Assembly: GCA_964035545.1 (NCBI GenBank)
Contig: OZ037771.1
Span: 1,127,628-1,191,627 of the forward strand
Direction: 5' to 3'
DNA length: 64,000 bases
Origin: Bugula neritina
Lineage: Eukaryota; Animalia; Bryozoa
How positions within the stretch are numbered: the stretch's first letter is position 1; the number at the start of each line of letters is the position of its first letter. Positions 16,901 to 64,000 of the stretch are shown here, one piece after another. The notes under the pieces were generated by a model. The model was not told where the DNA came from and did not search any database. It saw only the letters and a list, made by a program, of their open reading frames with translations. The position numbers and the translations under genes were made by a program.

Positions 16901-19900
16901 TGACGGAGCTGCCAGACTACAAGCTGGTGGGATACTCTCATTGGGCTAGCTGGTCTCCCTGTAACTCTAGCTGCAATGCTCCAGGCTACAGAAGAAGACA
17001 CGGTACGAGAGTTGTGCTCTCAGTCTAACTTCCTGTCCTCTATGTTTCCTCTACCCATTCTATTATTAAATATTAGCTGTCATAGTTGTATAAGGTAATG
17101 CTTCCTATTTCTCCCGAAAAAGTTGGCCTCCAACTGTAGACTGGGGTCCATGTGGTAGAGTGAGCCCTCATCAACTTTCTAAAGGTTGGGTTGATGCACT
17201 TTGATCTAGTTTCACTGATATAATATTATACCTGCTATATACTTGGGAAAGTTATGTGCATGTCATAGGAAGGTGTTATGTGCCTGTCTTAGGGAGGTGT
17301 TATGTGAAAAGCTTAGAGAACGAGCAACCGAGGCCACAGATTCTTCGAGACGTGATCGCCATATCTGGGCAGCGTCTGCTGCCGTGTCACAGCACTCTCT
17401 TCCAGTTTGCGAATCCAGTTTTCAGTCTGCCCGAAGAAGAAGAGATATCCAGGTGTGTTCGCGAGTGCAGACTGGAAGGTAAGTCCACTTCAGAGCATGT
17501 GACTGTCACAACTCAGGCTTCACAACTCGAACTTTGAAAGATAATGAAAATTAATTTGCCATCACTGGCAGCTGTAGGCAGATCAACATACTTTTAGCTC
17601 TTCATACAACTAAAAAATGTATCGTTTTTGTTTAAATATCAAATAAATTGAATAATTGGACTATTTAAAAGAAGTTATCTTTAAAAACTATTATAGACTC
17701 TACAATATTAAATTACGTATATATTAGGTCATGAGTTTATAGAGTTGTCTGCCCATATGCAGATGAAATAGCAGCTGTGCATGGGGCACAATAGAAGTTT
17801 GCTAGTCATATTAAGCATTATTATATTTCATACATGTAAACTTGAACAAAACCTCACGCTATGAGAATCATTACCTGGTCTGTGCAGCCTCCACCCTACC
17901 TTCAACTACTGAGAGGTTTGAAGTATTTGGGGCTACAACAGAGAGTATCCTTATCAAGCACACACTCTACCCTAAGGTTGGAGCCAGGCTGGTCTTGAGG
18001 TGTTACGGAGCCCAACTGAACCGCACAGTTAGGTGGTTCAACGGCACTAAACTAATACTGTGAGTACTAGCTAGTACTAAACTAATACTGTGAGTACTGG
18101 CTAGTACTAAACTGGTACTGTGAGTACTAGCTAGTACTAAACTAATACTGTGAGTACTAGCTAGTACTAAACTAATACTGTGAGTACTAGCTACTACTAA
18201 ACTAATATTGTGAGTACTGGCTAGTACTAAACTAATACTGTGAGTACTGGCTAGTACTAAACTAATACTGTGAGTACTAGCTAGTACTAAACTGGTACTG
18301 TGAGTACTAGCTAGTACTACTACTAAACTAGCACTGCAAAATAAGAATGAAATGTGTTCAATAGATAGCTAAACCTTGATAGCTGAGATCCACAAGCTCT
18401 GCTAAACAGCTGCCATTAGGCATATACTTTTCTTTTAAAAATAGATGAGTATTAGGCAGGTTTTAAGTGCATGTGCTAAGTTGATGTGTGCTAGAACTGT
18501 ACTAGATAAGAGCTAGGTAAATGCGAGTTTTGTTTTGGAATTGATAAAAGCATTTCTTTACAAGTGACTTTTAATATTATCTCTGAAAAATCCAATTTCA
18601 GTATTTTTGTGAACGATGATCAATAAGTAGATCACAAGAAAATTGGTAGTGTAGAACTTTGACACTTTAAATAAGCTTGCATTGTGTCCTTAAAGAATCA
18701 CTACCTACCTGCTTGTTTTAGAGTTGATGTTTTCGGTGAAGATGAGACCAGAAATGCCGAAGACGACGCCGCATCATCAAACCAAACGGCAACCAATACG
18801 AGCAGACGAGTTGAGATCTCTAAGACGGGAGAGCTAATTATTGACCCAGTAACTAACTATGATAACCAAAGATTCGCCTGTTGGGTTGCCAGGAAAAATA
18901 CAGTAGCATACGTTTTAGGTGAGGCGTAGGTGCTATGGCCAAGTTGGCTATAATCCAACACACAATGAACTTCTTTGTGTAGTTATTGTATACTGCCTGT
19001 CCAACTGGTAGTTTCTACAGTTAATAATAGGTCAGCTGGGCTGACTTGAATTTATTTAGATCTAAAGATGACATCATGCAATACTCAACACTTACTTAAA
19101 ATCAAACTGTAACTCCCCTAGCATCTTTGCAATTATTATAAGTACCATTAAACACAACCGCTGCTACCTTCATATTTATGTTTAACAAGCAAGACAAAAC
19201 ACACGGTCCATTGTGTGCTGAATTGATCCATACTACCCCTTTCAATTGTTCAGCCGCATGCATCAGATGCGTAGCAAGCAGAATATATATAAACTTCACT
19301 GAAATTGCGTTTGATTGTGTATAACAGTAAAATTATTGCAGTTCCTAGTGTATTACATTCAATTTTTGCATTTGTTTTTATAAACTGCAGTAAAATTGTT
19401 GCATTTATTAGTGTACTACAGTAATCTTTACCACAGTCAGGAAGAAAAGCTTTTGACTGAATGGGATAGTGTCTGGTAGTGTGAGTTTTAAATCTCTATT
19501 CAGTTTAAAATCTTTGTTATTGCAGACATAGATGGAATAAAAACTATAGAATACGGACAGTATTTGCTCTATGCAAAATACATGCTAATCTTTCAAGGTG
19601 TCTTTTTCCTAGTCTTCTGCATATATTTAATTATCCAACACATTTGGTTTAAAAGGCATCAACCCCAGGTGAGTTTAGCTGTTTTAAATAATTGTGTAAA
19701 GAGCATTGTCTTATAAATTATACAATATTATTGTATATATAAGATAACAGGATATACATAAATTCAGTAATTATGTAAATAAATAATATTCTTAGTTGAA
19801 ACATGGTGCCCTAGAGGTTCAGGCACACTGCTTACTTGTTTTGGGGGTATTGAGTTGTATTTATTTAGTAGTAATACCATGCTTAATAATTTAATTGATA

Positions 19901-20312
19901 AATTTATTAACTATAATTTGTATTTAATAAACCATTACATGAAATATCCAATTGATGTGTCGAACAGACAGACGAAGAGAGAGAAGGAGAGTATTACGCT
20001 GTGGACTATGAGAAGTATGGGTACTATACTGATGACTATTACGCCCAGGATTACTACTACAACGGGAACTACTACGACTACAGTGATGGGCAGTACGAGG
20101 GAGACAACTACTATAACACCGACTACGCGTACAGCTATGATGACTCAGCTGCAGAAGAGAGGAAGAGGAAACTGGCTGCTCCGGGCAGACGAATCCCGAC
20201 TTTGCTGAGATATGAGAGACTTGTGTTGGGCGAGAACAGCAACCCAACCAAGTTGAGTGAAACACCTCTGAAAACCAAAATAAAGGTTAAAAGTAAAGCA
20301 AAGAATAGCTAA
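13969..20312 (+). CDS. FAM187A-like type I membrane protein (signal peptide, Ig domain, TSP1-like Cys module, second Ig domain, TM helix, Tyr/Asp-rich tail)
   Basis: Exons 13969-14056 (signal peptide), 14535-14567, 14655-14759 (RTKR), 14959-15095 (VILGCPIC...W), 15233-15344, 15898-15996 (DAGQYFC across the junction), 16418-16536, 16867-17002 (WASWSPCNSSCNAPGYRRR), 17293-17478 (GRCY...C...C...C), 17888-18059 (LVLRCYGA...VRW), 18722-18918 (LIIDPV...D...FACW), 19526-19668 (TM), 19968-20312. Domain order and Cys/Trp pattern match what I recall of FAM187A. The first three exons are less certain. Confidence 0.78.
15565..15803. repeat. 27-bp minisatellite, ~9 copies
   Basis: Unit TAATACCTCTATAATACTTTTACCTGC. 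Confidence 0.93.
16604..16762. repeat. 13-bp minisatellite
   Basis: Unit CTGTCACACTCTG. Confidence 0.92.
18046..18330. repeat. 30-bp minisatellite, ~9 copies, beginning inside an exon
   Basis: Unit ACTAAACTAATACTGTGAGTACTAGCTAGT; the first copy spans the exon/intron boundary at 18059/18060. Confidence 0.96.
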
Positions 20313-21700
20313 TAGGCCTGAAGCTTAGCCTGGGGTGCAGCCCGAGGTATAGATAAAGACCTGAGATGTAGTCTGAGGCACAGACCCGCATGAGGTGTGG
20401 CCTGAGATGTTATAGACCTGTGGTAAAGATACACCTTTCAAGATAATCAAAATAAACATGGCCTATATTAGACACACAACTATAGTATTCTTAGAGGTAG
20501 TTGTGTTTATAATTTTATATGATTGACTATAATATAATACATTCCATCATACATCTACTCTGTCAGTTTATGAAATATATGTTATGATGAAATAAAGATT
20601 TATTCTACATAATGTAACACAACTACTATGTAGAAAATAATTCAAATAAGTACAGCACAAAGTTTGATGTTTATTAAAGCATTCAACCATTGGTGGAAAG
20701 ATCTTCTACATGTATATACAATAATTTTAATAAAGTTTAAAGAAACGTATAGCATTTTTCTAACATTTAGTATTGTATTGATTGCATTTTTCAACAATCT
20801 AACATTTTGATTAAAAAATATGTACAAAAAACAAACAGTTTGGTAATTTTAGCACCATTTGTAAAATATATACATATACAAGTAATGATTTAGTCAGTGT
20901 CAAACAACATGAGCTAAAATCTCTGTGTTCCTGATGGATGAGATATATAAAGGTATACTATCGTATGATAATAATGTATTTACATGATGTATTACATAAT
21001 ATATTAGTATATTTACAGATATTTGGTGAGAGTGTAGGTTAATTTTCCTAAAGCTGCCTATTTTCTAACTGTTTGCTTGATGAGAAGTTAATAGAGCTCA
21101 CTAGTCTAGCAGTAAATATCACTTGTTACGCACTAACAGATAATTATTAATTGTTTATAATTAATTCTTTGAATTAAAGCATTAGTTTGTCTCAATTGAG
21201 AAACTCAAATGATAAATTTTCACTAAAAAAGAAAATAAAAAGTCTAAAATATCTCTTTTGGCAGTCAAACCTTCTTGTATACTAAGCGGTGTTCTAGTAA
21301 CTTTTGACTCGTTGCTCTGAAGTAACTAATAAACTTGACTTTCAGCTCAGTAACTTGACCTCACGATAAATTTCTAATCTAGGGGTTTTGTACACCCCCA
21401 CCCCTTCCCAATCACTACTCAGATCCTTGAAACAGGCCTATTGAATGACTCACGATAAAATAAGTCACCAGTCCGCCATTTCCTCTAAACATCGTCTGAA
21501 GTTCCTTTCAACAGCATCTTTTGGAAGTTATCTGTCCCACAATATCTGTGATACCATGCGATGTACCTGTAACATAATAAATATAAATTCATTGAACCAT
21601 TTTGAAAAAAAAGAGAAAAACTTAAAATAACATTTGCAGATCATCATGTAATAAAAGTATAGCCAGATAGCCATAGTACCTGTAGTTGTTTGTGTCCAGT

Positions 21701-24361
21701 CTACAGATCTGGGTGGGTCTTCAGATGCACCGTGTAGCTACTCTTGTACATTGTATTAAAAAGACATTTTGAGCAAACATACATCTGCCTCCCTCTGGAA
21801 TGTAGACGGATGTGTTTAGGCATGCTGCTTGGATTGGCTGATCGGAATGGACATATCGGACATTGGTAAGGCTTTTCTCCAGTGTGACTTCTCAGGTGTA
21901 TCTTGAAGTTGTCTGCTCGTACAACCTGAACATACCGGTGCCGGCTCATATAGGTATAGACACCTCAAGTGATTGTATTTGTTAAATAGCAAATGAGTTT
22001 GTACCACAAGTTTACATTTAACCCAAAAAATCTTTAAATTGAAGTCAATTCCAAGTTTTTAATTATCATGATTGATATTGTGCGCTGTAAATGTATAAAT
22101 TATAAGAGATGTCAAACCTTTGAGCATACGTGGCATTTGATTGGTCGCTTGGAAGGAAATATGGAAATGACATCATCTGGCGTGCATGCATTTACACCTT
22201 TAGACGAATACCCAGCTTTACTTTTGCTTCCTTTAAAGCAGTGACTTGTATCTCTGTGTTTTATTTGTTTCTATCCAATTGAACCAAAAGTACAACAAGT
22301 TTACTAATCCTTCTACATATCTAATCTATGAAACTTACACATCATATGGTACACTATCCGAACTGTAGTAGTATACATATTATATGGTACACTATCCTAA
22401 CTGTAGTAGTATACATATTATATGGTACACTATCCTAACTGTAGTAGTATACATATTATCTGGTACACTATCCTAACTGTAGTAGTATACATATTATATG
22501 GTACACTATCCAAACTGTAGTAGTATACATATTATATGGTACACTATCCTAACTGTAGTAGTATACATATTATATGGTACACTATCCTAACTGTAATAGT
22601 ATACACATCATATGGTACACTATCCAAACTGTAGTAGTATACATATTATATGGTACACTATCCTAACTGTAGTAGTATACATATTATATGGTACACTATC
22701 CAAACTGTAGTAGTATACATATTATATGGTACACTATCCTAACTGTAGTAGTATACATATTATATGGCACACTATCCAAACTGTAGTAGTATACATATCA
22801 TATGGTACACTATCCTAACTGTAGTAGTATACATATTATATGGTACACTATCCAAACTGTAGTAGTATACATATTATATGGTACACTATCCTAACTGTAG
22901 TAGTATACATATTATATGGTACACTATCCAAACTGTAGTAGTATACAGATTAGACCTAAAAGCGTGACTTAGTGTATACAACGTACCTTTAGATTGGGAG
23001 ATGTTTGCTGTAAGATTATAGGTCTAGTAGAGAGATTCAGAGGTGCTGCCTGAGAGGTGCATTCGCTGCTGACAAGAAAAATAATGTAAACAAGTATGCT
23101 TGGGTTGTGGAGGATGCGAATATTGTTCTGTAATAAACATATAGACAGCTCTGTTATTATATTATTATTATATTATTAATCATATTATTGTATTATTATA
23201 TTATTAAATTCTTATATTGCCTATAGTGCTACTGTATTAATATATTATTATAGTATTCTTCTATCATATTATTGTATTATTATATTATTGTATTATATTG
23301 TTATTTTATCCTAGAATTACAATACAACTTTTACTCACTTGTCTATAGCGTAGGTGTAAGCCTGTCTCTTGACTCTCTCTATGCTATGTACAGAGTCGAT
23401 GTGTGACTGTCAACAGAATAGATGGAGATATGAGTACTAAAGCACCTTCTGCGTCTGCTTGTATTATACTCATAGTTACTTGAGCTCTAGTCTTGTTATT
23501 TAAACAAACAGTTATCATAATTGAGAAGAAGCAGCAACACAGCTTAGTGTAGTAGTAGTAGTGCTCACCTCTGGGTCTGTCTCAGAGACCAGGCTGCTCT
23601 TTAGTGACAAATCAATGGCCGCCATATTGGGTAGGAGAGAGTTACAATCGTCATCTGACACACTTTTCACTCTCACCTGCATTGAGTGAAAGAAACACCC
23701 AACTTGGTTTTGTAAGATTTATAATAAAATCACCTTGGAAAATACGTAAGCACTTAAAAATTATACTTTATACATAATAAAACATGCAATTATATATTAT
23801 ATAATATATGAAATTTATAAATTATACAGTTATATATTATACAATTGTGTAATATACATTTAGAAATTATACATACAATTACACAATCTGCCTCATACAA
23901 GTATACTCTGTAGAAGTTTTATTGGAAGTGACTGTAGAGATTACAGATGACGCTGTGATTTTATTTCACCAGCTCCTTACCTACCGAAGAATTGAAGGAT
24001 ATTGGTTCGGTAGACGCTGCAACAGGAGATGGAATAAATGACGTGATAGGTAAGCTATGCTGGTGGACAGTTTGGTGAGGAGGAAATGAGTCAGAAGCAT
24101 ACGTTGAGTTTGCAGACTGGGTCAACGGGGTCAGTAGAACATTTCTCATACAGACCACCAGCTCCTCTACTGCTAGCACAGCACTGACTATAGTCTGTAT
24201 ATGTCTGGTCTGCATTGCCTCTATTAGCAGTATGCTGTCGCTTTCAGCCAATAGTTGTCTTCCACTGATTCCGTCAGCCAACGGCTGTTGTCTACAGTTT
24301 TCATAGCTTATTAGGTGTCTTCCATTCATATCGGCAATGCTTTTGCTTCTGGGTAGGCCAA
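21701..24361 (-). CDS. C2H2 zinc-finger protein with three C-terminal fingers and CtBP-type motifs; 5' end uncertain
   Basis: Exons 24361-23985 (in-frame ATG at 24329), 23676-23569 (AIDLS), 23406-23339, 23068-22987 (PLNLS), 22270-22118, 21925-21701. Fingers: CHVC...HLRSH, a TGEKPY linker, CPIC...HIRLH, CSKC...HLKTH. Confidence 0.82.
22338..22947. repeat. 38-bp minisatellite, ~16 copies (zinc-finger gene intron)
   Basis: Unit TATATGGTACACTATCCTAACTGTAGTAGTATACATAT. Confidence 0.97.
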
Positions 24362-26780
24362 CTAAAAAAACATATAATGGGTTGTTGATCTATAAACAGG
24401 AGCTGCGGTAGAAGAATAAACTTGTTAAAATAAATGTTAGGGGGGGGGGAGGGGGTGAAAGTCTAGGGCGGGTCTTTACTAAAACATTAATTTCATGTCT
24501 TTTTATGGCTCAAACTTTGCATGCTCAAGTGACCAGTTCTAACGATGGTTGGTGATGTCACAAAGTGAACCAATTTCATTGCAAATTAAATAAGAATTTC
24601 ACAGGCATGAATTTATTACATCTCCAGTCAAAGTGTTACTGTAAATAATGGCCAGCAGACTGCTTTGCTGGTGGTGAGAGAGAGGTAACACTGTCATATA
24701 ATCATACTCTGATGGCTTGTCATCTGCATATAGAAATAACTCATCCAGGCAAACCGCATGTCAAGAAATAGCTGCAGTAGCTCACTGATGATGCAAACAA
24801 ATTCCTATCATCTATTAATATTCCAGAAGAAAACCTAGGATTGGAAATTAATTTGCATAAATGTCAGTGAGAGAATAATATGTGGTATAAAACAGATTGC
24901 TAAAATTGGTTTGACAGGGAGGGGGTTTGAGTTGACAGGTCCATATGTTTCAAGACAAATGACACCATAGCCCCAGTGTATAGTATCATATTGGATATAT
25001 AGTGCAACTATACATTGCTTATATAATACAAATGTCTATAGTTGTTCTACATATCTCGTATTATGGAGGACTTATTTTATATACTTTATCATTAACGTAA
25101 ATTCTGCCCATTTAAAACTTTGTATTAGCCAAATTGGTTTGGCTGTTATATGTCATCACCATTATAGAAATACTCCACAGCAATGCATTTTTAATCCACA
25201 TGCTGTTTTGTGATGCAGACTAAATAGTGGAGTTTACCATGGCAACAACCTTATCGCCTACGGTTACTTGACTCCATATTCTTTACACTTAAATGAAGCA
25301 CAGAGTTGTGGTGAATAAATGACTGCAGATTAATTATACTACACTGAGCTACTTAATTATGCTACCAGAGGACAGCCTATCGGTTGTCACGTGGTCACTG
25401 GGCAAGGGCTGAGCACAGGCTGTCAGTGAGGGCACGTATGAGAAGTAGAGCATGGTATGAAAGTAGGACATTCTAGGTTTAGTAAGTATCACTCACTGCT
25501 GGAACCAGTTTTGTGATGTATATATGTGATATAAGGTATATACTGAGTCACACCAGCATTATATATATATTATATAGCAATGTATAGAGTGTTCAGTCCA
25601 AATATGAAACAATACACTGTTATTATTAGATGTGCTCCCAAACTGAAGTTTGAATTGACTTTTAAATATTAATATCTGAAATTTAGACTAGAATTTTTGT
25701 ACATCAGTTTAGGTTTTGGGCAACAGTTGACCTCCGAACCTTCAACTAATCAGTTTTTTAATAAATAATGTATGATGTTTTGTAGTATATAGTATGTCTA
25801 GCAGTTGTACTGCACCTAGTATGGAGCAGTGTAGACAGTGTAGATATCAAGACATTTAGATAAAAGGTCAAGCCTTGCAAACAATAGTTCCAGTTCTGCC
25901 AGCTGCAGACCTAAGTTGGGGGAGTGCCTTAGACCCACCACCATCTAGTGTCTGGAGCACAGTCTACAGGACAGTCACCATGCCAATTGACCTGGAAATA
26001 GCAACAGCACGGCTGGTTGGAATAACTAAAGTAGAATTCAAGCTCATTGGCATTAAATCCAAGATTAGCATGGGCAATAAATCATCCAGTGCCAAGAAAT
26101 AACTCCACGTTAAGGTTCACTGGTCTCAATCCAACTACGATAAATTTTAATACATTATTTCATAGAACAATTTATTTCAGTTTGTCGGACCCCTCCCTCC
26201 CTCCCTCCCTCTTATCCAGAGGATTGCCAGCTAGACAACCAATCATATTTAACAGTCTCTGACACATTGTGATAAATGGTATAGGTTTAAGGACTAAAAT
26301 TGAAGGCAAGGCTGTTTAAAACTAGAAAATATTTTAGCTTACATAAGTTGGCACATGTAGCACATGCGCACTGCAGTACACTTGATGCTGGCACTTGGTA
26401 TTGTTAGTACAAGTGCTTAGATTCGAACTGCCAACTGCAGTACGTCTTTCTCCTTCATCAGCTGATACAGTTCTAAAGATATATTTATAAGCACTACATC
26501 AACACAGCAGATTACCTTAGCTTTGTGTGCTGCACCATACCTATGCCAACTAGGCAAGTCATGCTGCCTAATAAAAGTAGCAGTTTGTGTATTTTTTCAA
26601 TTACTCCTTCCTCAAGAACTTAAGGCAGCTTTGTTACAACATGACATATTTACATAATGCTGTGTTAACAATTCTCAGGAAATGAAAGTGGGTAGCTATG
26701 GCTATACCATTGCAAAATTATCTCAAGCATCAGCTATGTTCAATAAAAAAGTTTTGTTTCTAGAACAGATTATTATTGAA

Positions 26781-30841: not shown

Positions 30842-30850
30842 AATAAATAA
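30842..30850 (-). promoter_or_regulatory. AU-rich element nonamer UUAUUUAUU in the 3' UTR of the orphan gene
   Basis: Plus AATAAATAA reads TTATTTATT on minus, ~140 nt after the stop. A candidate AATAAA lies on minus at 30688-30693. Such motifs also arise by chance in AT-rich DNA. Confidence 0.4.
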
Positions 30851-30987: not shown

Positions 30988-33562
30988 TCACTGTCTACCT
31001 CCATGCAAACACCAAAATAAGTTTCTCGTTTTGAGCAAAATCTCCTGGTGGTCATGAGGCACGCGGGTGATTTCAGACGTGGGTATTGTCTCATTCTGAA
31101 ACATCAAAAAGTTTAATTAACACAGAAATAAGTTTTTCAAGTAAAATTCAAACTTGATATTTTTCTATCATAGTTGCTCTTAGCATACTAAACGGTAAAA
31201 TTAAAATGCCAAATGTTTCTGTTGGCTAATATTAATAATAAGAGCGCTACAATGTGAAATTAGTAGTTATGTGCTCTTGGATCATTGGGGAATTTACTCA
31301 CAGTTAACATTAGGTTCCTGATGAATACTGTGAATATTATTACAATACCAAATAAAAAATATCTTGAAATAAAATTGTTTTATTTATACGCAGAGCATCA
31401 TGTCATGTCTTGATATGACTCTATTATAGGATTTGGTACTCCACTAAATAATATTACATAATAATGCAATATTATTTAATACAGCAATGCAACACTGTAA
31501 TACAGCATGATGGGCTGCTTGCACATAAAAAAGTCTTACAAGTTTATAGTGACTATCCCTGTGAGAAACCCCTAATGTGTAGGGTCTCTGTTAAATCAGG
31601 CTAAAAGTTTATTTATATGTGGCACAGGAGAAATTATGACTGAATGCTCTTCCTAACATCACCAATGGCCTTTATTAGGAATCGAACCCAGGACTGCAGG
31701 TTCACTAAGCCAAACACTCTAACCCCTAGACCACAGCTGCTCTTACGACTTACATGTGCAGTTGGCATATAAGTAACTATCTCACTCACCACACAACTAA
31801 GGGCTGCTCCACAATCCACCATTATGGCACATGCGACACTGCTCAGTTGAGACTGAAATCTTTGAATCACTATTGGATGATTCACCGTAACTTTTGCTGC
31901 CAGATGGGTTTCATTAGACGACAAATGGCAGTATGTGCGACGCAACGTAGAGTGTATTTCCTCTCTTGCCTCCTGCAAAAAAGAACAAAGATAAGCAATT
32001 TGTGGGACACAAGAATATTTGCAATTTTGATATAGGGAGATGTGTAGATAAAAAGTGACCTATAGTGAATAAGCAACTCTGAAATACTGCATCCATCCTG
32101 AAATAGTCATGACCTAGCATTTGTTTGTAACCATAGCAACAGCTTGTTTAGGGCATTGACACTATTAAATTTGAATTATGTTTTTTTAAATAGAGAAAGT
32201 AAACAAATATAGGCCTCAGAATGGTATTGATAAAACAATTAAGAGTGACCCAGTGGTAAATATTATAATTAGGTGTGGGTGTAGCTGCATATTCCATAAA
32301 TAATATTACATCATAGTCTGTAATATATATGTGAATATATTATAGCCTACATAATATTACATATTCTGCAATATATATGTGAATATATCATACATAATAT
32401 TACATAGTCTGTAATATATATGTGAATGTATTATATATAATATTCCATAGTCTGTAATATATATGGGAATATATTATACACACTATTACATATTATACAC
32501 TATAAGTAAATAGACTATACATAATATTACGTACTCAGTAATATGCAAGATTACTTACTCTGTCAGTTGTTGGATCAAACCGTTCTCTACACCTTTGAGT
32601 TCTGCTAGACATTCCTCGAGTTAACGTTATTTCACTATTCGCTTCACTCTACAATAAAAAAAAAGGAAAGTTGAAAGACTTTGACCAAGAAAACCATTTT
32701 AGTTGACATCTTTTGCAAATTCTTAGTTTCTAAAATACAAGTACCTTTAAAAACCAAACCTTTCTACTTAATATATAATTTTCGATGTTTGGTTTTATCT
32801 TTTATATATTATAAAAAATATACTATTTGATAACGTTAAAAAGTTGGTATTTTATTTAAACCATTTTAAATAGCTTTTATTCTAATGTATTCATATGTTC
32901 AATAGAAACTGAGTTTGTATACAGTATATGAAAGTACAGTCTATACAGTCTATAAGATTAGCTGTTTAATCTGGTGATGTGTACTGCTAGCTAACATATT
33001 ATAATGGTCAACTAGCAATTTGGTATATGAAGAGTTGTCACACTTACGTATAGACGAATAATATTATCCAGAGAGACCACAGCACTGTTGATATGTCTCC
33101 TCAATGTGTTATAGTTGATACCAGATAGTCTCCTAAATGGTGCAGATGTAGCCGTTAACATTCCTGAGCTTTGAGGCTGGGTGTGACCATGCCCCACAAT
33201 TATATCCCCAGAGCTGGGAGAGCCGTGGTCTGATTGTACAGTCTGAAGAGGGGAATTACTCCACTGCTGTGGCATATGTCCAGAGTTGTTTCTACCCAAT
33301 AAGTTTAACCATACTTTTGGGAGAAAAACCACCAGTAGTATCACAGTGTGAACGTTATCTGTAAATATTAAGAATAGGTCAACATCCTTGCATAAAATAG
33401 TATGATTGTCGCTGTGCAGTAGAACACAAAGAGGTTTCAAAAACAAATTTTTTAGCCAACTTTTTGCAATAAAATAAAAAGCAGATTCTCTAGCCTTTTA
33501 CAGGAAGATAATAAAAACTAATTTCATATATAAAAACACTTACATGCAAAATAAAGATTCAT
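30988..33562 (-). CDS. Orphan secreted protein, 248 aa, 5 exons; candidate long-chain four-helix (IL-6/G-CSF/GH-type) cytokine
   Basis: Exons 33562-33544 (19 nt), 33358-33048, 32648-32559, 31972-31754, 31095-30988. All four donors are GTAAGT, acceptors are pyrimidine-rich, phases are 1-0-0-0, and the 747-nt frame is uninterrupted. Exons 3 and 4 are open only in the frame used. N-terminal hydrophobic stretch VILLVVFLPKVWL. The gene model is well supported; the family assignment is inference. Confidence 0.75.
31575..31742 (-). mobile_element. tRNA-derived SINE in intron 4 of the orphan gene
   Basis: Minus strand: GCAGCTGTGGTCTAGGGGTTAGAG (A box) ... GGTTCGATTCC (B box, 31678-31688), then a non-tRNA body matching the 26781 copy. 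Confidence 0.8.
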
Positions 33563-33680: not shown

Positions 33681-33930
33681 TTTTATATACCGACACTCCA
33701 GCCAATGGGTGGGTGCTCTGAGCAGGGAAATCCAAAATTATTCTTCGATGACTTTGCTACGATGAAAAAGAAAACCTCAGAGCACATGCAAACTGTTTAA
33801 CATAATTACCAGCTTATTGCACAAGTGTGAATTTATTGTTCATCCAATAATCTAGTTTTAGATCCATAGTGGGTCTTGCGTCTATTGAGAGAAAGAACAA
33901 AGGCAATGCCGGTTGCCATGGCAGCCTGGA
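33681..33930 (-). promoter_or_regulatory. Promoter of the orphan secreted-protein gene: TATA, CCAAT, kB-like, C/EBP-like and X-box motifs
   Basis: TATATAAAA on minus at 33681-33689 (~120 bp above the ATG); CCAAT 33702-33706; GGGAAATCC 33725-33733; ATTGCACAA 33816-33824; GTTGCCATGGCAGC 33912-33925. Confidence 0.65.
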
Positions 33931-39149: not shown

Positions 39150-41275
39150 GTTACCGAATAGCTAGTCAACAGTTACGGAGTTGCTAGAAAAAACCTTTAA
39201 CCTCAGCATGAGGCAGGCCTGTAGCCTGCAGCTGTACGTGAAGGTAGAGTACAATGTTGCTTCATCTCGTAATTCCTGGTTGACTGAACATATCAAGAAA
39301 TTCCCCTTTTTTTCACCAACAGGCAGACTTGAATAACAATAAAACCAATTTATCTGAAAGAAGGTAGGCAACACTTATTCCATAAGGAAAGTTAATCATA
39401 ATTACTGCAGTTATGTAATGGCACCATTAGGAATAAGGTTTGCATCAGCAAGTGTGTTGTATTGTCAATAGTAATCATCTAATTGGAAGAAGCCTTAGAT
39501 CATGATGAATATAGTAAGAATTAAATGAAAGTGGGACAGAAATACTTCCCTAGGGAATAGATATATTGGCTAGCTGTAAATTTTTTACTTAACTTTTGAA
39601 TCAGATTAAAACAAAATAGCCAATTCGTTGTTTAATATTCCAAAAATCGTGTTAGAAATTAGGATTTGACCTGCTGGCAGTTGTTGTGTACGAGGCCCAA
39701 ATAGGTGGAGCTGACACACCTAACCCCTGATGTTTATAGCTAAAACTGTTATAGGATAGATAGATAACAGAATATTTCTCAGAGTCTTTAACTCTGTATT
39801 CAATATCTGCAGCATATTAACCAACATCGGGAAAAATAATCTGCCATCATTATGGCTTAGCACAAGCAAACCTCTCTATATAATCATACAAACAAAAGGC
39901 AACATTGATAAGTTTCCAACAATGATTGATTAAGACTCATTACTTATTGCACTTCTCATAGGTTGAAACTAATAAAAAAAATGTATTGACATTAATATAA
40001 TTTTCTTTCAAAGTGGGCGACATTCAACATGGCAATGGAATTGTGTTGTATTCTTGTCTCTCTGAAGTGTGAACAGTTTGTTTATATCAAGTCAAAATAC
40101 TTATTGAGTTTAGACATCGATGTTATATGTCATTTAGAAAGAAACTGATAGTTTCAATTGTAACGAGCTATTGAAATGTAAAATGAAGTTGAAAGGTCAT
40201 TTGATCACGAAAAGGACACATGCATTAAATTGTGTACTGTTTATTGAAAAGGAATTATTTAAATTATGACAGGAGAGGTTTGAGCTGGCAGGTGGGATAA
40301 TAACAAACCTGTTCACAGTTTTAGCCTTACTTATTAGCCTTTGGATAATCCATAGCTTTCTTAAATTCTGCCATTAGCTTTATTTTTACAGCCTGAATTA
40401 TTTGCAATTCCAAATGTTGCAAATGTTACTTGTCTGCGTTGAAATTAAGATGAAACACCAAAGATATATATTATATGCATGTAAAGTTTAAAGCTATATA
40501 AATTGATGAAGTTTTAGCTGCAAGTTTGTTAATATTAGTAAAAAAAGTACATGCGTAGATAGATGGGACAAAATATGCTGTATTTTAAAATTCTTAATTT
40601 AGTGACAAAAACTATTTATAGAAATACGGACTACATATATAGAGATTATACTGGAAAAATAAAACAATATATTATAAAAACACTTGATAAAAAAAACATA
40701 AAATATACAGCTTGTAAAGGCATAATAGATGAAAACAAAATAAGAATAACCTTTACTAGTAGCACAACAATATAGATCCCATAAAAACTTATCGTCAATG
40801 GTGAAACAATCTAAGTATAAAAATAACATAGCTATATTTTTATACAGCTGTTATTACCACTATTATAGTAACTATGTACAAAAATATATACAAATATATA
40901 TATATATATATAAGGTATTGTACCAAAAAGTCAATGCGATAAAATATTTTGTTTCAAGACAACTTCCTCAATGGAGTTGGTTATGATAGGGAAAGGGGGT
41001 AAGGGTCATGACTAGCATATGCTGACAGACAGCGTAACTATATTTAACATAACAAGCCGGTCTACTGATAAGTAGCCATCTAAACATGATTGACATGTGC
41101 TTATATACACTAATACGTATCTGCACAGTCCTACACTGTAACACATCTAATTGATGCTCAGACTTCAACTTAATCACTTAATCAAGCCTCTTCCACTTTT
41201 GGGCCACAAACGTCTTCGCTTTCACTAGCAGTATTTAGAGTATAGTCTATATCGTGCGTATATAATATTGTATGC

Positions 41276-41435: not shown

Positions 41436-41463
41436 CTTATTGTAGTACAGTCTAAAGTCAAGG

Positions 41464-44400
41464 TCAAACTTGCCATGTCTGCACTTCTAAATTGTCTACT
41501 GAATCTTTAGCAGCTGTCTTGATGCTTTCCATGGAGAGTGAAGGGAGAGTTGAAGAGTGACCTTGAGAAGGGGCAGATATCCGTCTGCTATGCTGTGAGA
41601 CTACAATTATAAACATTAGCCATGTGATGGATGCAGAGATGTTGATAGGCTGGCGGACAGACCACCTGCTGGAAACAACTTTTGAAAATGTGAGATTAAA
41701 CAAGTACTTGCCAGGTGGAAGTCGGGGAGATGTATGCCCTCTCCCACTGAGATTGCATCTTTGTCTGCGTTGTAGAACCTGGACTATGGCATCTTTCTCA
41801 GCACACAATGCTTCTAATGCTTTTAACCTAAACCAGGATAACACAATATCAGATGAAGTTATGGAACTGTCAGTTTAAATAAGAGGTTATACAAGCAAAA
41901 GTCTGACAACCGGACTAGAAAAAGTTCACGTACAATTATACAAGATTAATTCTAGCTGCAGTGTGTCTATACTACAGTCTGCAGTGTGTCTGTACTACAG
42001 TCTGCAGTGACCAATTACAGCTGCACACATTACAAAACATGCACAAGTTTATTTTTATCAACAATTCCTAGGAGAAATTTCTACATTGAGGGTGTATTTC
42101 TGTGGGCTTTGCCGCAAACTATACCACTTTCTAATTCTATAGTGCAATAGAGCCTCTGGTCAGATGACTTTCCTGTACTCATTGCAGACTGAAAAGGAAT
42201 CGGGCCGGGTTCTTTCACAACTCTGTCTCGCGGCCATACATGCTCCTTTGGCATACTTTTATGTAAAAATAGATGCTGGACAATCCAAATTGTCACGGCT
42301 GATTACCCGATTAATATGATTAATTAATTCCTAACTTCTTCTCTTCTAATGATAGAAAATCATTCAAGTACTGTTACCTTCTTTGAAACTCAAAATATGA
42401 TTATTGCAGCTTCAGTTGAATATGAAAAGAAATAAAATTGGGTCTGGTAACAGCATCTAAGAGAGGGAACAAAGAGAAGGGTACTAGAAGAGGAGATGAA
42501 GAGGGGGACAAACAAAGGGGGACTAGAACGGGGAGGGGGACCAGAAGAAGGGGGCGGTGAAGAGAGGGGACTAGAAGGGGAAGGGGTCTGGAAGAAGGGG
42601 GCTGGGAGAAGGGGGGGGGGTACTGAAAGAGGCCACAAAGGATTTGCAAATAGTTGCAGACAAGAACATCCATCATAGCTGGTAGCTGCTGTCACAACAA
42701 GACATGATTGACCTATCAAATAACCTATAAGTTCACACGGAAGGAAAAATTAAACAGAATGAGGATGACTGCATGTCAGAAAGCCGTAGAGGTAGACATT
42801 AAGAAATACTTAAACTATAATAACTGTTTGTTATAGGGCACCATGTCAGGTTAGAGGGTGAAAATAACCTCAGCTCCTTACTTGGCCTCTAAGTGAGCGA
42901 CTCTTTTGTATGCCTGATGGGCCTCATCCATGTATCTCAACTTCTCCGCCTGTTCTTCAAGCAGAATTCTTTCCGATTCTTTGATGTTTTGAGACAAGGC
43001 GGCCATTTTAACTTCCGACTCCTCCTCAATAGTGGCCGAGGCATTAGACTAGACAATAGTATACCAGTAATATAATAATATACGTATATATACCACTAAC
43101 ATAGTAATATATGTATATACCAGTAATATAAAATTATACGTATATATATCAGTAACATAACAATATACATATATGTAGTGTATATAGAAACCTACAATAT
43201 AATAACATATATTTGGACATATAATATTACGCGATAAACTTACTTATTTAAAAGTATGTATATATTCATACCTTTGTCATATTGCATATTCAACGTTCTA
43301 CATTAAACCTTCTATCAACTGTAAAACTCTCTTTAAAAATTATCCTGGTTTTACAACATTTATTCTTGTATACATATACTTATATACTTTATACATATAC
43401 TTATATACTTTATACATATACTTATATACTTTATACACAGACTTATATACTTTATACATAAACTCATATACTTTATACACAGACTTATATACTTTATACA
43501 TATACTTATATACTTTATACATAAACTTATATACTTTATACATAAACTCATATACTTTATACATATACTTATATACTTTATACATATACTTATATACTTT
43601 ATACATATACTTATATACTTTATACATATACTTATATACTTTATACATAAACTTATATACTTTATACATATACTTATATACTTTATACATATACTTATAT
43701 ACTTTATACATATACTTATATACTTTATACATAAACTTATATACTTTATACATATACTTATATACTTTATACACAGACTTATATACTTTATACATATACT
43801 TATATACTTTATACATATACTTATATACTTTATACATATACTTATATACTTTACACAAATATTTATATTGGCTATATAATGCCAAAATACTATCCAATAT
43901 TTACATAAATTTGTCTACTGCACGTTAGTGTGTCCAGGTAACTCAATATACCCATCAAAATAAATGCATTGTACGAAACTTTAATTAAGATGGTATTCCT
44001 AGATGTGTATTATTATATATCAACAAGTATCCTGGAGGCCTGTAGAAGGTAATAAAATATATCAACAAGTACCCTGTAGGCCTGTAGAAGGTAATAAAAT
44101 ATATCAACAAGTACCCTGTAGGCCTGTAGAAGGTAATAAAATATATCAACAAGTACCCTGTAGGCCGCAAGCTCCTCTGCCAACAATTTAGACTCAGATT
44201 TTTCTGACTCCAATTCTTTTTTCAACGCTTGTACTTTAATCTGATGAGAGCTGATTGTCTCCTTTTGTTCTGAGGCTAAAAAATCAAACACAGTTAAACT
44301 GACCGACCTGAAAGAGGAGCCTTAGACCATGTTATCATGACCTAAGGCTAAATATTCATATTCCCAGACAATCAATTCTAAGTCATCCTTGAGCCAATGT

Positions 44401-47400
44401 AGCCATGCTGCCAGAGAAGTAAAACCTTAGACTTACTCAATGAAGTCAGTTGGCGAATCGTCTCCTCGTGTTTGTTGATGAGCATGCTCATGTCACTCAG
44501 CATTGACGACTGGTCTGACACCGTCTTCTCCAGCACCACTGCTTTCTCTGCAACAGCCAATCAAATGGTGACAATTGTCCACCAACTATAATTGCAAGTA
44601 ATAAACCCTTTCTAGCTGTAAAAAATATACAGAGTATACAGAGTATACAGAGTATACAGAGTATACAGAGTATACAGAGTATACAGAGTATACAGAGTAT
44701 ACAGAGTATACAGAGTATACAGAGTATACAGAGTATACAGAGTATACAGAGTATACAGAGTATACAGAGTATACAGAGTATAGAGAGTATACAGAGTATA
44801 GAGAGTATAGAGAGTATACAGAGTAGACAGAGTATAGAGAGTAGACAGAGTATAGAGAGTATACAGAGTATACTCTGTATATACTGTATACTCTGTATAC
44901 AGAGTTGAAGAAAAAAGCCTTGGCTGAGGTCGATAACACCAAGTTTGGTTTCTATTGTTTTGGTTGTAAAGTTTATTGGCAGTTCATAAACAGTGTTTTC
45001 ATAACTTTATCTTGAGGCTATATATTAAGTAATATTCATATTAAGTAATTAACACACCAATTATTTACAGTAACGCAACCTACATCCTGATAGGGTGGAA
45101 AGTTATATAAGCTTGAAACCTGGAAACTATGACATCAAACTTTATTAATTATAAAACAATTTTAGACTGAACTTTAAAGAGTTGTGAATCTAAGGTTCAA
45201 ACAATAGAACTGTTGAGAAATGTGTTTGAACACTTTTAATTTATTTTGGTCCTTTTTAAATTACAAATACAACATGCCTAAATATATTAGAACTCATTGG
45301 TAAACAAGTCTTCATCGAGAGGTTACTAGTTTGGTGCACACTTGCTTTTACTTCCAGCAAGTCTTTTATTGCTACTGAAGCCGTGTTGGAGCTAGCTTAT
45401 TCTTCAAACACTGCAATAGTCTGCTATACTTTAATATGTATCTAACGCTTTCTCCTGCAGCTATTGTTATATTAGCTCACAAAGCTAGATTCTGAAAGAT
45501 GTAATTCATCAAGTCAATGCTTCATGTAATGCAGTTAGTTCATCTACCTTGAATTTAATGTACAAGAACAGGGCAATTGTGTTCTTTCTTCTTATATGCA
45601 TTGGCTGGTGTAATTATAAAAACAAAAAGAACAGAAGTTTGCTAGAATTTTTCTTGAGGTTTATGCAGCCAAGTAAATAAAGGAAAATAGTCGCAATGAA
45701 GTCAAAGGCAAGAAAACTAGTACCTGTTTATTACAATGAATTGCATGCAGTAAAGTACTGTCAAAGGCTTGCGGCGTACAAGTGGTCAAAAAGAGTGTAC
45801 TTAAATAGATGGCCAACTGAATGCAAATCTCTTGTGGGACATCAATGTGAAGGTGGCAGAGTGAATGCATTGTGATTTGACTAGTTAGGGGCATTTCCTG
45901 ACATGTCACAGTATTTATTGACCAGGAAACCATTAAATCTGAACATAAAAAGGAAGGAAGAAATTATATTATAAAACAGGAAGGTTAATTATTAATCTAT
46001 AGAGAAAATTGGGCAGTAACATCTCCACCTCCACTAAACGGCTTTTATTAGATCTTGAAAAGAAATCTTCAAGCACTTTTCAGCATAAAATATTGGTTAT
46101 AAAACGGCCCAAGAATTTATATAAAGTTGCAAAATGTATAATTGTGCAGGACAAGGTATGTTCTTGCATATATAATTAGCAGCAATGATACCATGAATTA
46201 TAAAGAATCCAGGTAAGTGAGCAAAGCTAAATATATTGGCTAAAGTAGATCCACCCTAGCCCTAAGGGCTATACAGAGCCCCCCACCTGTAGGGTGAGAA
46301 ATTGAGACACAAAATGGTCTGGGATTAACTTATTTTTACAACAATCTGAGTCTATGCCGTTTATTTTTACACAAAGTTTTAAATCAAATAAAATTAAAAA
46401 AATTGTAATGAAAAGACAGCCCTGTGACAAAAGAGGCCTAAGCTTATTAGAAGAATAACAATTTTGATCGGTCAATGATTCATAAAGTGATTAAGTAGAG
46501 CTAATAAAATTCCCTGACGTAAGTTTAGTAGCCATGTGAGAATACCACCCCAGGGTGAGACCTGAGAAATAAGTTACACAACAGCTTGCAGTCCAGATGA
46601 TCCCCCACTTGAAGCACAACGCTCTCTTATCCTTTCTCAAATAGAAGCCCTGTCAACAAGGCCTGGTGAGGTGGGGTGCAGCTTTGATGGTGTTAAATTT
46701 ATCTCATATTATAGCAGTTAGAAGTAGAAGAACAACCGCAACCCAAACTGGAAATTATAAACCTAAGCAAATAGAAAATGTATGGCGTAGTGCATGTTCT
46801 ACGCAAGTGAACTAATAGAGGGTAGGTAGGCTAGAACATGACTTCATAATATCTACTAATTTAAAAGATTTTAATAAGTTTGGTAGTTCTAAAAATAAGG
46901 CAATTAATAATATTGTTTCCTTAAAATGTCGTGCCAGCAAGTCCTGGTTACTTGATCCTGAAAGACTGGATGATTATTACAATATAGACCTACATGAAGA
47001 CAAAATTAAAAAAAAAAGAAAAACAATCGATGCTTCATGTAGGGCTGAAAGAGAAAGTTTCGAAATTTTACCATGGAGGAGGTAAAATTTTGTAACACTA
47101 GTGTTTGGAAAATGCCAAAACATGGTAACCAAGTGGTGATCACGGCTACCTTTGTTGGATAACAGTTATTGTGAGCAACAGACAAAGATGTGTCTACTGG
47201 CCTATCTCTTAGGGGAACAATTAAACTGGTTATTTAAGATAAACATTAAAGTATTTTAAGAAAAGAATACATAACATTGCCACCTCCAAGGCTATTGGAG
47301 ACAATATATCACGGATATAGCCCACTAGTTAGATGACAAACAAAAATAGAAACATAGTAGGAGCCAAAGTATTGACAATGAGTAGGATGTGCTTAGTTCA

Positions 47401-50400
47401 ACAATGATCAGTATGAAGGAGTAGCTAAGTCAATGATTTGGAAGTTAGTTCTTTTTGACTTTCTAGAAGAATACAGACAGCCATGTTCAGATTGTGTAGC
47501 CATGGCATTTAAATTATATATAAAATTCTTTCAGATTCTTCAAATACAATAATTTTTGTTGCCTCAATGTCGCCAAAACTAGGTTAAGCAAAACTTAGGA
47601 TATTAGCAATATTTCCAAATTGATAGATACATGTTTATTATTGATGTTGACTTGTTTTTATTTATTTCCAAATCTGACAAATTTACAGAAAAATTAAAAC
47701 AGAAAACAAATTAAGGTAGCAGCAATCTTTCAAGTGCATCCTGAACCATTAGTCCCTTGCAAAGGTTTAATGAGTGCCTAGCATATGGTTAATTTATATT
47801 TATATTTAGTTAATGTTTTCAGGAGTTAAATTTTAGTTACACAACAGCTGTAATGACCTTGAGTGCTCAATTTCAATGCCATTGCAATGACATAAAAATA
47901 AACCAAATCCATAAAAAGTGTGATGTACAGCACATCAAAACCTTCTGTAATTATCCTACTACTATAGCTACAGTCTATTACCAATCATTTACCAGCAATG
48001 ATCAATTAGCAGTTGTTAATTTGGAACTAAATTAATCACACAAATTCTGAATGCAGTAATTAAACTATGTTCTATTAAACTCAGCTGATTGCGTAATTGA
48101 AAAGTTATGAAACAATTATACTTTAACATCTTTGGAATCACAAAATGTTGCAACAATGAAAGACTTGGCATGGAAACCATGAATAGAGTTAGAAAATGAA
48201 GGCATCTTCTGTCATTGTGACATGAATTTCATACAAACTACACATCCTCTTTCTTAATATCAAAAGCAGCTGCTGAAATCTGTCCAAAATAAAGTTATTA
48301 GCTGAAAAATAAACTAAACCACCAATGTGTGAACAGTGCCATTTGTCACGAGTTTTAAAAGACATTCAAGTTACCAGCAAGTACTAAAGTACTAAAGCCC
48401 GCCACTACTCAACCGAATACTAGAATTTTTAAAATCCTTCTCAGTCAAATGGCTAAACTAAACTAGAATGAAATTAACGCTGCAGTTAAAAACTTGCTTC
48501 AGTAGCAAAATAGAACTAGAACTTTACATCTTGTAATAGTTTAGGGGTGGGGGACTCTAGCCCCTTACAATTACCATGATTCTGGTGATTTGAAGCCTCC
48601 AGATTCTTAATATTGAGATCCTGTCGCATCCTGATGGCGTTGGAGAGACCCTCCTTCTTCACAGAAGACTTCACCAGACTGTTGTGAGCTTCGTGCACCT
48701 TCTGCAGCTCACACTCAATCTAAACATTCCTCCGTCAAATTAATGTCCGTCACAAAATCTCAACTCACTTGATTAGAACAATCAGATCATTATAGACAGC
48801 ATGATGAGCAATGTAGAGTGAACAAAAAAGTATGGTGTGAAGGAATTGATAAAGATGTAAGCTACAGAAGACTACAGGAAATACAATGCCGAAGAGAGCT
48901 TCTGCAGCTGCATGTCTGAGGGCAACATTGCAGGGAGAGAAGAACTTGTAGAGAGCTAAGGGTACTACTGATAAGGGTGACAGTGTGAGCAGGAGCTAAG
49001 GCTACTACTGAGAGGGGTGACAGTGTGAGCAGGAGCTAAGTAAAGCAACCCGGAAGAACAGATACACAGGGAAGTACCAATTACCAGGCAGCAATAACAA
49101 TTACCTCACAGATAGACTAGACTGCTAAATATAACTCCAGGAAGTTGTGAAACCAAATAAAACGACTAAATATCTGTTATCTAACAACTACACAAGTACG
49201 GCAAGCAGGTATGTAAGACAGAGTGGTGGTGTGTAAGACAGAGTGGTAGTGTGTAAGACAGAGTGGTGGTATGTAAGACAGAGTGGTGGTGTGTAAGACA
49301 GAGTGGTGGTATGTAAGATAGAGTGGTGGTGTGTAAGATAGAGTGGTGGTGTGTAAGACAGAGTGGTGGTATGTAAGACAGAGTGGTGGTATGTAAGACA
49401 GAGTGGTGTGTAAGACAGAGTGGTGGTATGTAAGACAGAGTGGTGGTGTGTAAGACAGAGCGGTGGTATGTAAGATAGAGTGGTGGTGTGTAAGATAGAG
49501 TGGTGGCGTGTAAGACAGAGTGGTGGTATGTAAGACAGAGTGGTGGTTTGTAAGATAGAGTGGTGGTGTGTAAGACAGAGTAGTAGTGTGTAAGACAGAG
49601 TGGTATGTAAGACAGAGTGGTGGTGTGTAAGACAGAGTGGTGGTATGTAAGACAGAGTGGTGGTGTGTAAGACAGAGTGGTGGTGTGTAAGACAGAGTGG
49701 TGGTGTGTAAGACAGAGTGGTGGTATGTAAGACAGAGTGGTGGTATGTAAGACAGAGTGGTGGTGTGTAAGACAGAGTGGTGGTATGTAAGACAGAGTAG
49801 TAGTATGTAAGATAGAGTGGTAGTATGTAAGATAGAGTGGTGGTGTGTAAGATGGAATATCAGATAGAGGGACACACCTTGTGGAGACGAGAAGCCTTCT
49901 TGTAGTAACCTTCCAACTCATTTCTAAGACCCTTATTTTCTTCTGAGAGTATTTCTACCATCTGCGAAGCCCGAGTGGCCAGAGCAGCGAAATCTTGTTG
50001 TTGTTCAGAATCCAACAAACGAGAAGATCTGCAACATTCAATGCAGACGTCACATAGATAATGAGTGCAGACGTGACAACCTCAGCGCAGACGTGACACA
50101 GATAATGAGTGCAGACGTGACACAGATAATCAGCGGAGACGTGACACAGATACTGAGTACAGACTTGACAAACTCAGCGCAGACGTGACACAAAATACAG
50201 ACATCACACATAGATACTGAATGCAGTGTAAACTAACATTATAGGCAAAATGAGTTCTCAGACTATTAAACTCACAAGAATGTTGTGTTTTTGAGACAGA
50301 AGTGTGGAAAGAGGATGAAATGAGGAGACAACCACTCACTTGTATGACTGAGATGAGTAGTGACTAGATTGGTGAGATGCAAAAGGCAACTGAGCCCCAG

Positions 50401-59349: not shown

Positions 59350-61137
59350 ATGGATCAAACTGCTGTTACTACAGAAGCTTTGAGACTGGCTAGACAGTTG
59401 AAAGATGAGGGCAAGCATGGACAAGCTTTGGCTTACTTTCTCATTGCTTTTCACTCAGATAAAGAGTTGAAGGTCAGTTTTACAGTTGAATGGTGTTGAC
59501 CCTAAAATATTTTGAATGTTTCAGTTTTTGCATGTATTACTAAAATTAGAAAAAAAACTTTACGCTAGTAAAATGGCAAGTTTAGAGCTGTCAAGTACTT
59601 GAATTGTTTTGCCAAATCTACTTGATTAAGTTTATCTACTCAAGTTGTTTACAAGGGTTTTTAGTATTAGAAGAAATTACTGTTTTTGTTTTTTTGGCAT
59701 GTAATACCATTGCTTTTCTATTTCAATGCTTGAAGCCAGGTAGACTGGTGGTGGTAGGCGGTGAAAATTGGTGAAAATCGGTGAAAATCGACAAGGGCTT
59801 CAAGAAAGTCAGTAAATTGAAGTAACCTTTTTTTTCTAAAGCCTTTCTTCTATTCATGGACAGTCTGCATGACATATCACAAACTGTAATAATATGCATG
59901 TTTCTTGTAGGACCACACGGTGGTTGTGGACGAATTTGTAGACGTGTTTTGTGTTGGCTGTGATGCGTTGCTACAGAAAAATGATACTGAAAACCTATTT
60001 GAATGCTTTGCTCAGGCACTAGAAGCTTGCCCCAACTGTGCCAGACTCTACAGCCACATGGGTACAATATATTACAGGTGATCATACAATATATTACAGG
60101 TGATCATATTATATATTACAGGCAATAATATGATATATTACAGGTGATAATACAATATATTACTTTACCATTTATCATAATTTAATGATGTGGTATACAA
60201 TTGCATTTATTTCGACTATGTGTTATGCAATGTTACACAATGAAATAATATAATGTAAATTATACCACGAGTGCTAAATGCAGTGATGTGTACTACACAG
60301 CATACTACCACAAGTGCATGTTAGAACCTACGATACTTTACATCCTAATCTACACTGAAATGTATGTCAGAAGTAGAAACTTGTGTTTCTTTTGCAAGGC
60401 TGGGCTATTACACGAAATCCATGGATAGTTTCACTCAGGCTCTCCATTACAATCCCCACTGCGCTAGCACTATTGAAAATGTAGACAATCTAAAGTGTCG
60501 GGTGGTGGACCGGTGGCACTTCAGAATGTTGAATGATCAGCTAAGAAACAAGGCTTTCTACAAGGCTATCAGACATGCCAGCACGCTTGGCTTTACCAAT
60601 CTTCTCGATATTGGATGTGGGAGCTCCTTGCTGAGGTATTGTCAAATTTCTACTCTAGAAAGTTTCCTTTCTTGATTGAGAGCTGAAGGCAGAGGGAAAT
60701 AAGACAAGAAAGCTCAACATAGCTAGTGTTTGCTCCATTACTTGATAGTATGCTATAAATATAGTGTGATAATTTGCTGATCTGCTCATTTCTATGGCTA
60801 ATTCTCAATAGATTCCCAACTCTGAGGTGGTTTGTAGAAGGTTCTGGTGAATAGTTCTTACTTGATTGCAATATAATCCACAGTTATGAGTTCTACTATA
60901 TCTAATGGTATTACTGCTAAGTAGTTAAAGAGCCCAGTTAAACTTCTACTTAGTTATCTATATATTATAGTTTATTGACAAGTAAGCCTCAGCTTGCAGG
61001 AGTTATGCTCACTTTATATTTAGTATATTCTAATTCACTAACATAACCTGTAGAGTCTGAGGAGTTGTGTGCACCTAGCATTCAGTATATTTCTACTCAC
61101 TAATATACTACCTGTAGAGTATAAGGAGTTGTGTGCA

Positions 61138-61200
<63 letters not shown>

Positions 61201-63668: not shown

Positions 63669-64000
63669 GTATAATCAACTGCTTACCTGTAGGTCATTAT
63701 ATATAGCTTTATGTCATCACTAATAAATGGTTGCCTTGTGCCCCTCCCCAGCGTTACTCACCTCTGTACTTAACTGTACTCTACTGTCGTTGGTGAATAC
63801 ATAATGTCATGACGCTGTGCTGTTACCTCTTACACTGGCCACTAATATGCAATCAATAAACAGTTATTAATAAAATGTTTTACTGTCGTGTATGCTTCAT
63901 GTGATATGTAAAAGTTCTCTATGTTGTTATGAAATAAGTTGAAATATAGGAGTCAACCCAACTCGAATATCTTATCACAAGATGCACTTTACTATTTAGT

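Follow-up and report, generated by a model that had tools for sequence, protein, structure and literature searches.

The stretch of Bugula neritina DNA analyzed here (the window; 64,000 nucleotides, contig positions 1127628-1191627 of a 216-Mb eukaryotic assembly) carries a five-exon gene on its minus strand at 30988-33562. The exons join in frame to give 248 codons and a stop, with intron phases 1-0-0-0, and the gene contains no stops or frameshifts. It stands alone, without evident genes for about 7 kb above and 6.5 kb below, and its product is probably a secreted, all-helical orphan protein, as judged from sequence and structure models. A reading of this DNA from its letters alone (the sequence-only reading) had proposed this gene with its 19-nucleotide (nt) first coding exon and these phases, together with six cysteines and a dibasic Arg-Arg pair (RR). 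The coordinates, the frame, and the splice sites all check, and the cysteines (Cys130, 155, 188, 194, 200, and 242) and the RR (82-83) are present. The coding exons, with lengths in nt and amino acids (aa), are as follows.

33544-33562, minus strand: exon 1, coding part (19 nt); start of the signal peptide; phase-1 donor; identical in the diverged relative described below
33048-33358, minus strand: exon 2 (311 nt); remainder of the signal peptide (to about aa 28), spacer, RR, and predicted helix A; phase-0 donor
32559-32648, minus strand: exon 3 (90 nt); polar 30-aa loop between helices A and B, with Cys130; phase 0
31754-31972, minus strand: exon 4 (219 nt); predicted helices B and C; Cys155, Cys188, Cys194, and Cys200; phase 0
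30988-31095, minus strand: exon 5 (108 nt); Pro-containing loop between helices C and D, short predicted helix D, Cys242, and the stop

All four donors read GTAAG and all acceptors end in AG, and the exons have a guanine-plus-cytosine (GC) content of 41-45% versus 26-33% in the introns. By a generic score, the model donors rank 3, 4, 5, and 11 among the 219 GT sites of the region and the model acceptors 1, 2, 5, and 15 among its 196 AG sites, the weakest acceptor being that of exon 5 (rank 15). A second in-frame exon 4 donor at 31790 outscores the one in the model; its use would shorten exon 4 to 183 nt and the protein to 236 aa by dropping the 12 aa that follow Cys200-Val201. Beyond the stop, in the presumed 3′ untranslated region (UTR), there is a strong acceptor at 30893, and the frame behind it (30893-30816, minus strand) encodes 25 hydrophobic aa with one Cys, possibly an alternative last exon and possibly a chance occurrence in AT-rich DNA.

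The diverged relative is a 1457-nt contig from Logan runs SRR4020080/83 that spans the promoter and the first two exons. It retains the CCAAT and TATA boxes, the ATG, exon 1 (0 of 19 positions changed), exon 2, and three splice sites, while its intron 1 carries indels that break any reading frame. The two sequences differ by 14% far upstream, by 9% in intron 1, by 4% in the part of exon 2 that encodes the signal peptide and spacer, and by 0% in exon 1. With promoter, exons 1-2, and their splice sites kept and frameshifting indels confined to intron 1, this uncatalogued gene is real and constrained. Around the coding exons, we located the following elements.

33681-33687, minus strand: TATA box, 125 nt above the ATG; conserved in the relative
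33702-33706, minus strand: inverted CCAAT box; conserved
33725-33733, minus strand: NF-kB-like 9-mer, 46 nt above the TATA box; GGATTTCCC here and GGATTTTCC in the relative
33816-33824, minus strand: C/EBP-like site; identical in the relative
33912-33925, minus strand: RFX X-box-like palindrome, a motif match only, with one mismatch here and perfect in the relative
30843-30850, minus strand: single AU-rich element (ARE) core, TTATTTAT, in the 3′ UTR; weak in an AT-rich genome
30688-30693, minus strand: AATAAA polyadenylation signal, about 295 nt past the stop

The NF-kB-like, C/EBP-like, X-box-like, and ARE motifs are weak evidence, having been picked among 12 motifs tried: an NF-kB-like site is found in 5% of background windows, and background 500-nt windows carry a C/EBP-like site in 24-47% of cases. 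By eye, a second X-box-like element lies below the gene (window 25234-25250) and another NF-kB-like element, GGGGAATTTC, about 5.7 kb above it (window 39300-39312). The best-scoring donor of the whole region, AAG/GTGAGT at 33674 (minus strand), sits between the TATA box and the likely start and is kept in the relative; with an upstream promoter, it could splice to exon 2 and bypass the signal peptide start.

Near its start, the encoded protein has a predicted secretion-type hydrophobic helix (aa 9-28), followed by a predicted disordered spacer rich in Ser, Gly, His, Gln, and Pro (aa 33-81) and by two further features.

33129-33134, minus strand: dibasic RR, aa 82-83, a possible convertase site at which cleavage may occur; retained in the relative
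33048-33113, minus strand: helix A, aa 89-110, with an AlphaFold predicted local distance difference test (pLDDT) score of about 80; fast-evolving

Structure predictions, like the database searches, were made exon by exon. Folded alone with AlphaFold, exon 2 gave the signal-region helix, then a disordered stretch (aa 33-88), and finally a helix at aa 89-109 (pLDDT about 80). Exon 4 alone gave helices at aa 142-171 and 173-207 (exon residues 2-31 and 33-67) with a break at the Pro174 turn and a mean pLDDT of 50, and fold searches with it returned generic hairpins only. The secondary structure predicted in these two exons consists of helices, without strands. In exon 5, the first 14 aa form a stretch that contains Pro, after which comes a hydrophobic-rich C-terminal segment of 15-17 aa with the last Cys. 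The sequence-only reading had mapped helix A to exon 2, the loop to exon 3, helices B and C to exon 4, and helix D to exon 5, and had called all four segments amphipathic. The first three assignments are supported, with low confidence for the B-C pair, while the predicted helix D is short; measured against shuffles, the helical moment bears out amphipathicity for A (p 0.002) and C (p 0.02-0.04) and fails to do so for B (p 0.13) and D (p 0.52).

An up-up-down-down bundle requires long, short, and long connections between its four helices. Here, the connections are 30 aa from A to B, about 3-4 aa at Pro174 from B to C, and 20-34 aa from C to D, with the B and C helices predicted at low confidence, and this modeled pattern would fit a cytokine bundle of that topology. 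Cys155 and Cys188 face one another across the predicted B-C hairpin; either bundle topology would permit pairing of the other four cysteines, and Cys geometry therefore does not discriminate between topologies. The dibasic sites raise the alternative of a prohormone or neuropeptide precursor cut into several smaller peptides, which we consider very improbable. Such a precursor would account for the signal peptide, the spacer, the dibasic pairs (82-83, 151-152, and 93-94, the last of which reads KR in the relative), and a Gly-Arg close to the C terminus, but predicted helices enclose the pairs at 93-94 and 151-152, there are no repeated peptides or Gly-Lys/Arg-Arg amidation sites, Pfam gives no hit, and the Cys spacing is unlike that of insulin, CHH, cystine-knot, or saposin proteins.

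With exons 2, 4, and 5 as queries, a search of 5.8 billion proteins, limited to those of 0.55-1.75 times the query length, returned the relative described above and nothing further. HMMER with exon 4 found no true homologue among 1.84 billion representative proteins; its lone match, a 53-aa protein, was rejected as a tandem-repeat artefact. The exon-wise search of PDB sequences gave no relative, a designed-protein match (E 0.13) being rejected as chance, the JGI metagenomes were blank, and the Atlas search yielded no relative, with all matches under 0.85. In Pfam, a low-power search with every exon at E up to 10 found no IL6, IL11, GCSF, Hormone_1, LIF_OSM, Leptin, EPO_TPO, Unpaired, IL10, or Interferon; a DX match (E 0.008, short of the cut-off) was rejected as chance. 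The full-length product of the gene itself is absent from the protein databases too. When the exons were searched against the genome, no paralogue was found, indicating a single-copy gene, and no look-alike genes or tandem array occur within 100 kb on either side. Because short exon queries are low in power, these blank searches show only the absence of close kin on record. By sequence comparison, then, the protein is an orphan and lineage-restricted, in agreement with the sequence-only reading, and the confident match to an unrelated known family that would have told against it did not appear in the exon-wise searches.

Changes between the gene and its relative are unevenly distributed. Of the 15 aa changes, ten lie in a single window of 20 codons at helix A (p 0.00025), where the nonsynonymous rate (pN) is 0.22, versus 0.03 in the remainder of exon 2 (Fisher p 0.00015). 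Helix A also has a one-codon indel, and its hydrophobic positions remain hydrophobic. At the sequence level, the pattern looks like that of a partner-binding surface under diversifying pressure. Clustered rapid change between close lineages would also suit a secreted all-helical effector that is not a cytokine, such as a lysin-type gamete or self-recognition protein or an antimicrobial helical protein, as would the orphan status, a phase pattern that is not rare, and the X-box-like palindrome, which is typical of ciliated or sperm cells. We hold an effector of this kind to be unlikely, while giving it appreciable weight: the gene is single-copy and outside any tandem array, long-short-long loops are unexpected in simple up-down bundles, and the NF-kB-like and C/EBP-like sites are conserved.

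Vertebrate long-chain class I cytokine genes have intron phases 1-0-0-0. Like the gene described here, those for IL-6, IL-11, G-CSF, GH/PRL, EPO, and leptin have five exons in these phases with a tiny first exon, and the 19 nt of the first coding exon equal the figure for human IL6, whose coding exons measure 19, 191, 114, 147, and 168 nt. Vertebrate long-chain class I cytokines also share with our protein a signal peptide, a predicted helical core of about 165 aa, and a long AB loop in a short exon 3, whereas the protein here has no sequence similarity to them, a different Cys pattern, a 50-aa disordered spacer and RR ahead of helix A, and a helix D of about 16 rather than about 25 aa. Drosophila Unpaired 1-3, the Domeless ligands, are likewise secreted protostome proteins, in which an N-terminal extension precedes a predicted helical cytokine domain; unlike them, our protein is smaller, comes from a different phylum, and has no exon that matches Pfam Unpaired. 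Intron 1 falls after codon 6, inside the coding part of the signal peptide. Because introns are reportedly depleted within signal-peptide coding regions (PMC7259759), this position is more telling than the phases and more specific than a phase-1 intron past the cleavage site. Fish and mammalian IL-6 genes have five exons, and the first intron of fish IL-11 lies 7 nt past the ATG (PMC3271213). A screen in lamprey yielded 132 genes with the target phases; 14 of these were small with a signal peptide, and one was a helical cytokine. Phases therefore act as a filter, and the fold decides.

From the sequence and the models, we tentatively take this intact, lineage-restricted gene, present in a single copy, to encode a secreted helical cytokine of class I type, with confidence a little short of even. 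That the product is a helical cytokine of either class I or class II we regard as moderately probable. The class I-type reading is partly supported, the support covering the orphan status, the secretion-type N terminus, the phases, helices A-C, and the loop pattern.

Under this class I-type reading, the signal peptide would be cleaved near Gly28, and the disordered spacer would be either carried or cut off at RR82-83. Residues 84-248 would then form an up-up-down-down bundle of helix A (89-110), the long AB loop, helix B (142-170), a short turn, helix C (175-194), a short extra helix, the CD loop, and helix D (228-244), held by three disulfides, among which Cys155-Cys188 across the B-C hairpin is best supported. 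The TATA box and the NF-kB-like, C/EBP-like, and ARE motifs would suit an inducible immune or injury signal, and helix A would bind a Domeless/gp130-type receptor and thereby activate JAK-STAT signaling. Above Pfam cut-offs, the genome has two loci with a STAT-binding domain and one with a JAK FERM F2 domain; it also has a sub-threshold receptor-type match.

C4:3714168-3714910 and C5:11198359-11198481: STAT loci
C1:14547879-14548130: JAK-type FERM F2 locus
C5:1441810-1442031, minus strand: Lep_receptor_Ig match (E 0.037), a possible cytokine receptor exon by its sequence

A search for the WSXWS pattern was discarded as too loose to serve as a receptor finder.

Several observations weigh against the class I-type reading, and some bear on the gene model itself. 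We searched for an RNA run containing the locus and found none, and the one public run compared with it is genomic DNA that covers only the repeat in intron 4.

31540-31742, strand not assigned: SINE-like (short interspersed nuclear element) high-copy interspersed repeat in intron 4; very high contig depth in the genomic run

The support from a second sequence covers exons 1-2, not exons 3-5, and the c-region of the signal peptide is atypically hydrophobic. We assign a small chance to an error in the model toward its 3′ end, or to a protein that is membrane-anchored or not expressed. The missing RNA run and full-length database product, the rank of the exon 5 acceptor and the stronger acceptor at 30893 with its hydrophobic 25-aa end, and the unusual c-region all speak for it. 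Exon 5, however, has an exon-like GC content (45%) and brings the sixth Cys, the frame is intact, and in the relative the promoter and exons 1-2 diverge less than the DNA around them (4% and 0% versus 9-14%).

Other points concern the assignment to class I. Helix D, placed from the sequence pattern at about aa 228-244, is short (15-17 aa), and with B and D failing the amphipathicity test, four amphipathic helices of about 20-30 residues were not found. IL6Ra-bind, LIFR_D4, and Jak1_Phl profiles drew blanks against the genome, and the receptor is not confirmed. In helix A, the synonymous rate is raised too (0.23), and the excess of pN over the noncoding rate is marginal (p 0.05), which makes conversion or a cluster of mutations possible there. 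Since intron phases occur at about 5:3:2 (PMC7259759), the 1-0-0-0 pattern is expected in about 4% of five-exon genes, and in more among secreted ones. Membership of the long-chain IL-6/G-CSF/GH group is not established, given no profile match, the short helix D, and a fold and receptor that are putative; a class II layout or the helical effector considered above suits the data almost as well. Finally, exon 4 is longer and exon 5 shorter than in IL-6, and both are nearer to IL10 and IFNG sizes.

These sizes bring in a class II cytokine (IL-10/IFN-gamma-like), with helix A in exon 2, the loop in exon 3, helices C, D, and E in exon 4, helix F in exon 5, and one intron more, within the signal peptide. 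With breaks at Pro174 and Gly195, exon 4 allows a three-helix reading, and its sizes of 219 and 183 nt equal human IL10 exons 3+4 (219 nt) and IFNG exon 3 (183 nt), while the short last exon is nearer IL10 (93 nt; IFNG, 135 nt) than IL6. The IL-10 family, IFN-gamma, and the lamprey and lancelet IFNs also share with our gene a short last exon and phase-0 introns at three places: behind helix A, behind the loop exon, and ahead of the final helix. We nevertheless judge a class II identity quite unlikely. All class II introns are phase 0, in contrast to the additional phase-1 first intron here; the last helix shows no IL-10/IFN signature, Pfam and PDB give no match, and a structure screen did not find the IFN fold outside chordates. 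An oyster protein, CgIFNLP, has been claimed as class II-type (PMC9756803).

A further step beyond the class I-type reading is that the protein could be a spiralian example of a true IL-6/leptin-class ligand, with a Domeless/gp130-type receptor, unlike Unpaired in sequence and with the vertebrate 1-0-0-0 layout kept; this is possible, and we find it more doubtful than plausible. If true, the 1-0-0-0 gene architecture would date to the bilaterian ancestor, and the gene would belong to a hidden, unannotated bryozoan cytokine repertoire. Leptin and cytokines of the IL-6 family are reported from jawed vertebrates only and not from lamprey, tunicate, or amphioxus annotations, and the ancestor of Domeless-like receptors is older than the protostome-deuterostome split (PMC12284397). 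No class I ligand is listed in a review of mediators from annelids and bivalves, whose authors expect hidden cytokines (PMC9756803). Should its shape be confirmed, the protein would become a candidate activator of JAK-STAT in this animal branch, and a concrete gene with a testable product makes the question of the spiralian JAK-STAT activator directly testable. Screens that combine intron phase with fold have already uncovered lamprey and lancelet interferons, and the approach therefore has precedent.

A second secreted gene of comparable build lies on the same contig.

C7:2053939-2055762, plus strand: five-exon gene, 862 kb away; exons of 43/116/81/148/65 nt; phases 1-0-0-1

It encodes a 150-aa secreted protein with four Cys and, like the gene in the window, has a signal peptide split by a phase-1 intron, a Cys in exon 3, and a similar-looking C terminus (aromatic-Cys-Leu-x-x-Gly-x-x-stop). 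Kinship between the two found no support, as exon-by-exon alignment was no better than shuffles (p 0.54). The shared C-terminal motif was dismissed as evidence of kinship: its DNA pattern had 8 matches versus 8 in the control, and the only other in-frame match is not an exon. Either there are many diverged bryozoan cytokines, or small helical secreted orphans often look so. An element resembling the intron-4 repeat was seen by eye near this second gene.

No Rfam or tRNA features were found. Neighboring genes in the window include the following.

3000-9561, minus strand: NCKAP1 gene (Pfam E 3e-73)
21700-24330, minus strand: C2H2 zinc-finger gene
41460-48000, minus strand: coiled-coil gene with an Angiomotin_C-like stretch (E 0.002)
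60364-64000, plus strand: TPR-containing arginine methyltransferase-like gene, PRMT9-like by eye

At 19855-20312 (plus strand), downstream of Ig-like-looking exons at about 16-19 kb, a Tyr/Asp-rich open frame without a Pfam match is followed by a basic stretch. An exon resembling a dynein-regulatory-complex protein was seen by eye at about 13 kb.
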